Made by a program: the position numbers and the translations under genes
IMG/VR virus record: IMGVR_UViG_3300023257_000007
Location: 1-64,000 of that record
Strand: one strand, 5' to 3'
Length of the DNA stretch: 64,000 bases
Notes under the pieces: generated by a model
What the model was told of the DNA's origin: nothing
What the model saw: only the letters and a program-made list of their open reading frames with translations
The model's database searches: none
Part shown: positions 53,358 to 53,758 of the stretch, one piece after another
Layout of the letters: each line of letters begins with the position of its first letter
Numbering within the stretch: the first letter of the stretch is position 1

Positions 53358-53387
53358 TATATTTGTATTAGTTAAAATTAATATATA
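53358..53387 (+). promoter_or_regulatory. Promoter of the pth2 operon: Bacteroidota-type -7 box plus TAATATATA motif
   Basis: TATATTTG (TAnnTTTG) at 53358-53365; TAATATATA at 53379-53387. Confidence 0.5.
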
Positions 53388-53410
53388 AATAAAAATAAAA
53401 AATAGAAATT

Positions 53411-53758
53411 ATGACGTAGAACAAAAAACTTTATGTAATTACAAGAAATGACTTACCATCCGGTACAAAAGCCGTTCAGGCAGGTCACAGTTTAGCTCAG
53501 TTCATCCTCGAACACTTAGAAATATCACAACTGTGGCACAAAGAATCCCAGTATTTAATTTATTTATCAATAATTGATGAAAATGCTTTATTGCGTTTAA
53601 TTGAAAAATGCAATAAATGTAATCTTAATATATCCGTATTTAAAGAACCAGATATAAATAATGAGATAACATCTATTACAATTGAGCCAGGAAAAAAATC
53701 TAAGCGATTAGTTGGTCATTTACCATTATTATTTAAAAAAGAAAGGATAACAGTATGA
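53411..53758 (+). CDS. pth2: Peptidyl-tRNA hydrolase type 2 with in-frame amber at codon 3 (missed by ORF track)
   Basis: ATG ACG TAG then NKKLYVITRNDL..G..AVQAGHS...W...YLIYL...FKEPD..NEITSI..P...LPLL; its stop overlaps the next ATG (ATGA). Confidence 0.85.

Follow-up and report, generated by a model that had tools for sequence, protein, structure and literature searches.

Lambda bar minigenes, which run from an ATG through one to three sense codons to a stop, provoke peptidyl-tRNA drop-off and are associated with the pth(rap) phenotype; when minigenes are translated, ribosomes terminate poorly because the nascent peptide is very short. In prfB, the gene for release factor 2 (RF2), a +1 frameshift takes place at a UGA, and the product is itself the factor being sensed. 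TAG is recoded by phage suppressor tRNAs in Lak, crAss-like and other gut phages (Borges et al., 10.1101/2021.08.26.457843; Peters et al., PMC9523058), and phage XacN1 encodes two tRNA-CUA in a genome that is not recoded, for which its authors found no target genes (Yoshikawa et al. 2018, PMC5852040). PTH2 proteins have already been noted in jumbo phages, and a role in ribosome rescue was proposed for them (Iyer et al. 2021, PMC7824862). Here we describe a peptidyl-tRNA hydrolase gene (pth2) that is interrupted by an amber codon directly after its start and is accompanied by an amber suppressor tRNA gene, in the first 64,000 nucleotides of IMG/VR virus record IMGVR_UViG_3300023257_000007 (hereafter the window), together with its relatives in other phages. 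The two genes probably form a suppressor-gated translation unit, in which Pth2 synthesis would depend on the phage's own amber suppressor.

The amber-interrupted pth2 gene and its conservation

The window has a GC content of 24.8% and carries a terminase large subunit gene at 50150–52477. The pth2 gene comprises two parts:

53411–53419, plus strand: leader ATG-ACG-TAG (start codon 53411–53413, ACG 53414–53416, amber codon 53417–53419), followed by AAC; read directly
53420–53758, plus strand: Pth2-domain coding region (PF01981), 112 sense codons (53420–53755) and a TGA stop (53756–53758)

A first-pass annotation, made from the letters of the window alone, had reported an ATG-ACG-TAG that runs on in frame into 112 sense codons encoding a complete Pth2 protein, and re-reading confirms that the amber interruption is real; its start coordinate of 53358 is, however, intergenic, the open reading frame (ORF) beginning at 53411. 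As it had also noted, the strand KLYVITRNDL begins two codons past the TAG, the final TGA shares bases with the ATG at 53755 that opens the next ORF, and there is no later ATG in frame. The 112-residue piece contains no methionine, and the first in-frame ATG, GTG or TTG past the TAG is a TTG at 53591, which lies 57 codons downstream and is the 58th codon of this piece. Over 6336 bases that include the TAG, the window agrees base for base with two IMG/VR contigs from separate assemblies, 3300023257_000007 (348 kb) and 3300022868_000009 (344 kb).

The 112-residue piece matches the Pfam PTH2 profile PF01981 with 35.5 bits (gathering score 23) over profile positions 2–115 of 115, as do all 58 aligned relatives, and a profile search of the PDB leads to the Pth2 structures 2zv3, 1rzw and 1q7s. 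The AlphaFold2 model has a predicted local distance difference test (pLDDT) value of 94.9 and a predicted template modelling (pTM) score of 0.87; the best 14 Foldseek matches to it in the PDB are all Pth2-family proteins, the first 13 with template modelling (TM) scores of 0.70–0.78 and E-values down to 6.5e-9. Residues Q20, H23, E76, P77, D78 and T84 are invariant across 58 sequences, and the Q/H, acidic and T positions line up with conserved positions of 2zv3. Judged by profile and predicted structure, the piece is a complete Pth2-fold protein and a putative hydrolase. In gp293 of Tenacibaculum phage pT24 (L109 2588–3406; loci are cited by number, with coordinates within the locus) and in L018 (2992–3906), the Pth2 domain is fused to a C-terminal extension of about 170–200 residues, that of L018 giving a weak HD-domain match (E 0.006) below threshold.

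Conservation was assessed across 88 loci, which include seven from GenBank huge-phage and Lak genomes (tblastn) and the best 80 of 173 relatives from an IMG/VR scan; the search patterns of that scan lie inside the domain, so the start region is unbiased. For most loci, flanks of 3 kb were examined. The arrangement of an ATG, one to three sense codons and a TAG, with the TAG at codon 2–5 (hereafter the lock), is shared by 80 of the 88 loci, which represent 64 distinct contexts, the leaders of the relatives being one to four codons long. A sense codon at this position in homologues, which the first-pass annotation had named as the sign of a recent mutation or a sequencing error, is thus not what the relatives have. 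The in-frame stop just 5′ of the domain is TAG in 82 of the 88 loci, whereas TAG makes up 16.8% of the stop triplets of the window (binomial P about 5e-56, uncorrected for relatedness, a value that overstates the independence of phylogenetically related loci). Protein identity among the relatives is about 40–50% and the leader peptides vary (MK, MT, MS, MCL, MSL, MKDT, MTH and others); the base after the TAG is a purine in all 64 contexts (A in 53, G in 11). In those relatives that possess a Shine-Dalgarno sequence, this is placed 5–9 nt upstream of the leader ATG and not of the post-TAG codon, from which it is therefore separated by 12–18 nt.

In a weakly resolved maximum-likelihood tree (73 proteins, 115 columns) the lock occurs throughout the family, and the unlocked forms appear as three to five nested losses. 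The unlocked clades are Lak with L010 and two contigs binned as Thermoplasmatota; high-GC phages, including mycobacteriophages; and one copy on a Leptospira chromosome. The Lak Pth2 is nested within the same protein family. Five relatives (L002, L090, L088, L054 and L076) carry a second TAG within the conserved domain, followed in four of the five by an I/V codon, and an intact enzyme in these relatives requires that the internal TAG be decoded. The internal TAGs align with E/D, Q/D/E and K/E/Q columns, which is compatible with insertion of Gln but is not diagnostic.

Two loci show variants of the arrangement. L027 (IMGVR_UViG_3300035208_009193, 675 kb) has the geometry of the lock at about 2980–2992 with TAA as the stop (ATG-AAA-GAA-ACA-TAA-ATT) and no tRNA within 3 kb. 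Prevotella phage Lak-A2 (L006, MK250019.1) has ATG-AAT-TAG at about 2980–3000, before the Pth2 domain and one base out of frame with it, and no canonical start in frame; its nearby suppressor (2240–2312) is a tRNA-UUA, not a tRNA-CUA.

Suppressor tRNAs and the genetic code of the genomes

The window contains two candidate amber suppressors:

55154–55226, plus strand: amber suppressor tRNA-CUA of elongator type (ARAGORN; Rfam tRNA, 60.9 bits)
27073–27541, plus strand: GOLLD-like large RNA with a tRNA-CUA-like gene inside it at 27139–27213 (ARAGORN; Rfam tRNA, 45.4 bits)

The first of these, the tRNA that the first-pass annotation had placed at 55154, lies 1.4 kb 3′ of pth2 and closes the plus-strand gene block to which both belong. 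A suppressor tRNA gene is found within 3 kb of pth2 in 68 of the 88 loci and is co-oriented with pth2 in every one of them. There are 79 tRNA-CUA genes near pth2 (63 distinct), compared with 18 for the next commonest anticodon, and at three loci a tRNA-UUA stands in place of tRNA-CUA. Many of the suppressors directly adjoin pth2, lying 10–40 nt past its stop or 67–69 nt before its ATG. The unlocked relatives L010, L104, L106, L007, Bxz1 and Myrna also have a suppressor next to pth2, so that the pairing of Pth2 with a suppressor is even more general than the lock. The possibility that tRNA-CUA serves as an initiator at the UAG was ruled out, since an initiator-type GGG:CCC anticodon stem is present in none of the 63 distinct tRNA-CUA. 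The identity elements of these tRNAs are heterogeneous, and comparison with the other tRNAs of the window is uninformative as to identity.

The GOLLD match (RF02032) spans the full model (1–416) with 93.9 bits, below the gathering score of 150, and an E-value of 1.3e-24; the surrounding 1.9 kb or so (about 26280–28150) contains no convincing ORF. The acceptor stem of the enclosed tRNA-like gene is made up of U and A throughout. This embedded tRNA-CUA is possibly a second source of amber suppression. An Rfam scan around both tRNAs gave no theta or hepatitis delta virus (HDV)-like ribozyme. At L015, L019, L020 and L042 (about 600–1650), a transfer-messenger RNA (tmRNA) gene and a block of three to four tRNA-Thr genes precede the locked pth2 by about 2 kb.

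Outside pth2, the window follows the standard code. It has no TAG with at least 50 open codons on both sides and no in-frame TAG in its terminase gene, TAG terminates 7 of its 82 ORFs, and pth2 is its sole case of an ATG, a few codons and a TAG leading into a long ORF with no nearby restart. The flanks of the other loci are likewise not recoded, with the exception of Lak-A2, which has 22 in-frame TAGs across four genes. The closest complete relative, LR756500 (462 kb), was read over its whole genome: four TAGs have at least 50 open codons on both sides, against 105 TAA and 45 TGA, and all four resemble the end of one gene followed by the next. Its ORFs end in TAA 384 times, in TGA 67 times and in TAG 24 times, and no other convincing lock was found genome-wide. 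It has exactly one tRNA-CUA, located 776 nt downstream of its locked pth2. Since both LR756500 and the window are otherwise unrecoded, a point absent from the first-pass annotation, pth2 is the only evident client of the suppressor in each.

Among cultured phages, the lock is present in Tenacibaculum phage pT24 (NC_049383.1, 234.7 kb) as ATG-AAA-TAG-ATA, with the Pth2 domain 16 codons further on. The annotated start of its gp293 is 87 nt too late and removes strand 1 and the Q..H motif, an example of how gene callers mis-annotate locked pth2. An annotated 'tRNA-Sup', whose anticodon we confirmed as CUA, lies 2.6 kb upstream of gp293 on the same strand. Bxz1 (L091 2483–2491, NC_004687.1) and Myrna (L092 2474–2482, NC_011273.1) carry what may be described as a remnant form of the lock, ATG-TAG-GTG or GTG-TAG-GTG, in which the final GTG is the annotated start and the two codons before it separate it from the Shine-Dalgarno sequence; their tRNA-CUA, 306 or 130 nt downstream, are annotated as 'tRNA-OTHER' or 'tRNA-Ser'. 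XacN1 was considered as a cultured example and set aside: its Pth2 gene (ORF295) starts at an ordinary ATG with no tRNA in the vicinity, and neither of its two tRNA-Sup is flanked by a locked gene. The homologues in Aeromonas phage phiWae14 and Xanthomonas phage Xoo-sp13 have neither a lock nor a nearby tRNA.

Proposed readthrough of the amber codon and rival explanations

If the suppressor gates Pth2 synthesis, a ribosome would initiate at the ATG at 53411, add one residue and meet the UAG. Where release factor 1 (RF1) wins, a dipeptide and no enzyme would be produced, whereas decoding of the UAG by the tRNA-CUA encoded at 55154–55226 (possibly also by the GOLLD-embedded one at 27139) would give the full-length Pth2-fold peptidyl-tRNA hydrolase. 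With the amber at codon 2–5 the off state would be cheap and the waste minimal, and, with the UAG decoded by the suppressor only, Pth2 output would track suppressor activity. Poor release-factor action on so short a nascent chain should favour the suppressor, and a purine after UAG is the classical context favouring amber suppression. The first-pass annotation had proposed that Pth2 is made only upon UAG readthrough, which the lock (80 of 88 loci) and the tRNA-CUA linkage (68 of 88) support; its accompanying suggestions, namely rescue of the tRNA pool as the purpose, opening of the lock by limiting RF1 alone, and an analogy with lambda bar, are ones that we would hold only as conjecture. As it appears from comparison of the loci, the conserved stop with its adjacent suppressor gene looks like a deliberate translational gate and not a mutation.

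Several observations weigh against suppressor gating. Within the 3-kb flanks, 20 of the 88 loci have no suppressor, although one may lie farther off. The GK-containing loop of 2zv3 is absent from the phage subfamily in the alignment, where it forms an insertion in 2zv3; in archaeal Pth2 a GKGK loop carries a catalytic Lys, and with this loop missing the activity could differ. Directly after the TAG, ATT follows in about 70% of the 64 contexts and an RTN codon (R, purine; N, any base) in about 89%, against backgrounds of 4.3% and 15.2%. This preference is not fully explained by the purine at +4 and would also suit a restart codon, while TAG AAC, the context in the window, is a minority form. 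In Bxz1 and Myrna the GTG has an ideally spaced Shine-Dalgarno sequence (7 nt), so that translation there probably starts after the TAG.

The RTN preference is a feature that would be expected of a start-stop mini-ORF with re-initiation at an adjacent ATT or GTN, by which Pth2 would be made with no need of a suppressor and the linkage to tRNA-CUA would merely reflect a region rich in tRNAs. In Bxz1 and Myrna the GTG after the TAG, preceded at 7 nt by GAAGG or GGAGG, is indeed the annotated start, and the window encodes its own initiation factor 3 (IF3; 61397–61939). IF3 polices non-AUG starts. We nonetheless regard re-initiation as unlikely. The codon after the TAG is AAC in the window, GTA or GTT at 13 loci and another non-start codon at seven (AAC, AGC, GGC, AAA, AGA), and the internal TAGs of the five relatives cannot be restart sites. 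Re-initiation also leaves unexplained why TAG is used (82 of 88) in place of the much commoner TAA, why CUA dominates beside pth2 and why the sole suppressor of a 462-kb genome lies there. The downstream non-AUG start that the first-pass annotation had raised as an alternative is implausible in the window, because AAC follows the TAG and starting at the next ATT would delete strand 1. A usable start at or overlapping the stop, as stop-start coupling demands, is absent from the window, present in Bxz1 and Myrna (GTG) and arguably present in the ATT loci. Furthermore, M-x-TAG-I occurs sporadically on neighbouring genes whose relatives start normally, in a family of about 82 residues (3 of 12 distinct copies) and in a 142-residue ORF of L072; the I/V codon accompanies the TAG, not Pth2, and the cassette behaves like a portable gate. 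The 82-residue family, which is absent from the window, stands immediately 3′ of pth2 in about 20 loci; it is locked at L061 3346, L073 3533 and L080 2606, and starts normally ('MLN..') in L030, L074, L078, L082, L089, L063, L071, L032 and others.

We give little credence to the lock as a sensor of release-factor or ribosome state, whether host near-cognate tRNAs read the UAG when RF1 is limiting or the leader is a bar-like drop-off minigene to which Pth2 is secondary. Its leader has the anatomy of a minigene of two to four codons and is tied to Pth biology, and prfB provides a precedent for an early in-frame stop as a sensor. Against this, the tight, co-oriented linkage of tRNA-CUA indicates a dedicated tRNA as the decoder, and a bar-type minigene needs no in-frame fusion to an enzyme, whereas 80 loci have the lock in frame with the domain and Lak-A2 alone has it out of frame. 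That these are ordinary phages of code 15, in which TAG is a Gln sense codon throughout late genes with no special meaning in pth2, is very unlikely. The closest known relatives include the TAG-recoded Lak, with its heavily interrupted Lak-A2 flank, and phage suppressor tRNAs are established agents of recoding (10.1101/2021.08.26.457843); the window has the phage tRNA-CUA genes (55154–55226, 27139–27213) of such a genome, but not its many in-frame TAGs. No other window gene, its terminase included, requires TAG readthrough, and TAG still terminates 7 of the 82 window ORFs. LR756500 is free of internal TAGs genome-wide and the flanks of the other loci are not recoded; genome-wide recoding is thus ruled out for the window and for LR756500. 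Moreover, a neutral sense codon would not remain at codon 2–5 beside a variable leader across the whole tree, and the recoded TAGs of Lak lack the RTN context. A lone in-frame stop near the start would, in a single sequence, look like a nonsense mutation; with two identical assemblies, the lock in 80 of 88 loci, an intact domain retaining the invariant Q20, H23, E76, P77, D78 and T84, and a confident structure model, the chance of a recent nonsense mutation, pseudogene or sequencing error is negligible, and the comparative data refute such an origin.

Returning to suppressor-dependent readthrough, which we infer to be the route to Pth2, its purpose may be that Pth2 recycles peptidyl-tRNAs, possibly with peptidyl-tRNA(CUA) among them, that arise where the suppressor is active and TAG is still a stop. 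Suppression would lead to readthrough, stalled ribosomes and dropped peptidyl-tRNAs, and feed-forward compensation would be the most economical coupling; a more specific option is that Pth2 recycles or limits the suppressor tRNA itself. We offer as a tentative and rather speculative extension that pth2(UAG) and tRNA(CUA) form a feedback module, the amber sensing charged suppressor and the Pth2-like enzyme recycling peptidyl-tRNA(CUA) or limiting suppression, thereby setting the level of UAG readthrough. Such a module might be the seed of full TAG recoding, as in Lak, and might explain the target-less suppressors of 'standard-code' jumbo phages.

Neighbouring features and comparison with known systems

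Between pth2 and the tRNA-CUA the window contains further ORFs:

53755–54535, plus strand: two small ORFs of 138 and 123 residues (ORF list), not conserved in most relatives
54629–55123, plus strand: 164-residue ORF directly 5′ of the tRNA-CUA (tblastn of window ORFs against the loci)

The 138- and 123-residue ORFs have weak family matches or none, and tblastn finds the latter in one other locus. The C-terminal 65 or so residues of the 164-residue ORF (ending ..EKGDFYK) recur 3′ of pth2 in 14 other loci, and 5′ of the tRNA-CUA where one is present; these relatives include L001 3460–3864, L002 5173–5361, L026 2041–2238, L031 4118–4318 and L090 4172–4360. The ORF matches no Pfam or PHROG family and may be a third component of the module. 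A promoter and terminator scan of 52400–55600 returned 29 sites against 25 expected, which is uninformative in DNA of 25% GC, and the sole terminator-like hairpin near the tRNA-CUA is on the minus strand. At L030 2184, L058 1715 and L086 2224, just 5′ of an intact pth2, the lock and the first 25 or so Pth2 residues are followed by an unrelated HNH-like protein of about 230 residues; these ORFs look like mobile endonuclease insertions that duplicate the 5′ end of pth2.

Elsewhere in the window, the IF3 gene at 61397–61939 (minus strand; IF3_N 82 bits, IF3_C 102.6 bits) has an ordinary ATG start and may bear on discrimination against non-AUG starts. Four paralogous ORFs of 540–620 residues, at 7606–9219 and 10096–11751 on the plus strand and 14693–16546 and 45342–46961 on the minus strand, match phrog_3339/phrog_559 (homing/HNH endonuclease; E down to 7e-135), an unusual copy number for 64 kb. 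A Pfam scan of 70 window ORFs also identified auxiliary genes that are unusual for a phage, encoding two response regulators, a histidine kinase, NAPRTase, NAD synthase, dihydrofolate reductase (DHFR), ClpS and a leucine-rich repeat (LRR) protein (11746–12345), and an intein splicing domain in two ORFs.

To date, stop-codon recoding in phages has been portrayed as a switch that acts on late genes at the scale of the genome, whereas here a single conserved client gene is accompanied by its linked tRNA, an arrangement shared by over 80 contigs of huge phages from many environments and by a single cultured phage, pT24. The role of suppressor tRNAs in standard-code jumbo phages, for which targets had not been identified, thereby becomes directly testable; the arrangement also offers a natural minimal amber switch with its context rules, and possibly a hint of how recoding begins. 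Full-text searching, which does not extend to subscription journals, found no paper in which Pth2 is connected with either an amber codon or a suppressor tRNA.

As in the TAG-recoded gut phages, a phage tRNA(CUA) and an in-frame TAG would tie translation of a gene to a phage-driven change in decoding. Those phages, however, have dozens to hundreds of TAGs in late genes, and the present family has essentially one gene with one TAG, at a fixed N-terminal place and in a conserved 3′ context; the words 'hydrolase' and 'N-termin' do not occur in the text of 10.1101/2021.08.26.457843. With archaeal and eukaryotic Pth2 and the PTH2 of jumbo phages the protein shares its fold and its hidden Markov model (HMM) family, PF01981, and the account of jumbo-phage PTH2 by Iyer et al. 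(PMC7824862) mentions no link to an amber codon or suppressor tRNA. It departs from canonical Pth2 in that the phage subfamily is without the GK loop of 2zv3, and from the Pth2 of XacN1 (ORF295), which has a normal ATG. XacN1 resembles the phages described here in being a standard-code jumbo phage with tRNA-CUA; in the family of the window, unlike in XacN1, a target is evident.

The leader ATG-ACG-TAG has the start, one to three sense codons and stop of lambda bar, and likewise a connection to Pth. Bar minigenes are free-standing and poison Pth-deficient cells, whereas the mini-ORF of the window is in frame with the 112-codon Pth gene and forms its entrance. As in prfB, an early in-frame stop would set output through competition between termination and an alternative decoding event; here that event would be UAG readthrough by a dedicated tRNA, not a frameshift, and the gene encodes a hydrolase instead of a release factor. 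A further likeness is with synthetic amber biocontainment and orthogonal-suppressor switches, in which an early TAG imposes dependence on a tRNA; those are engineered, while the phage lock is natural and ancient.
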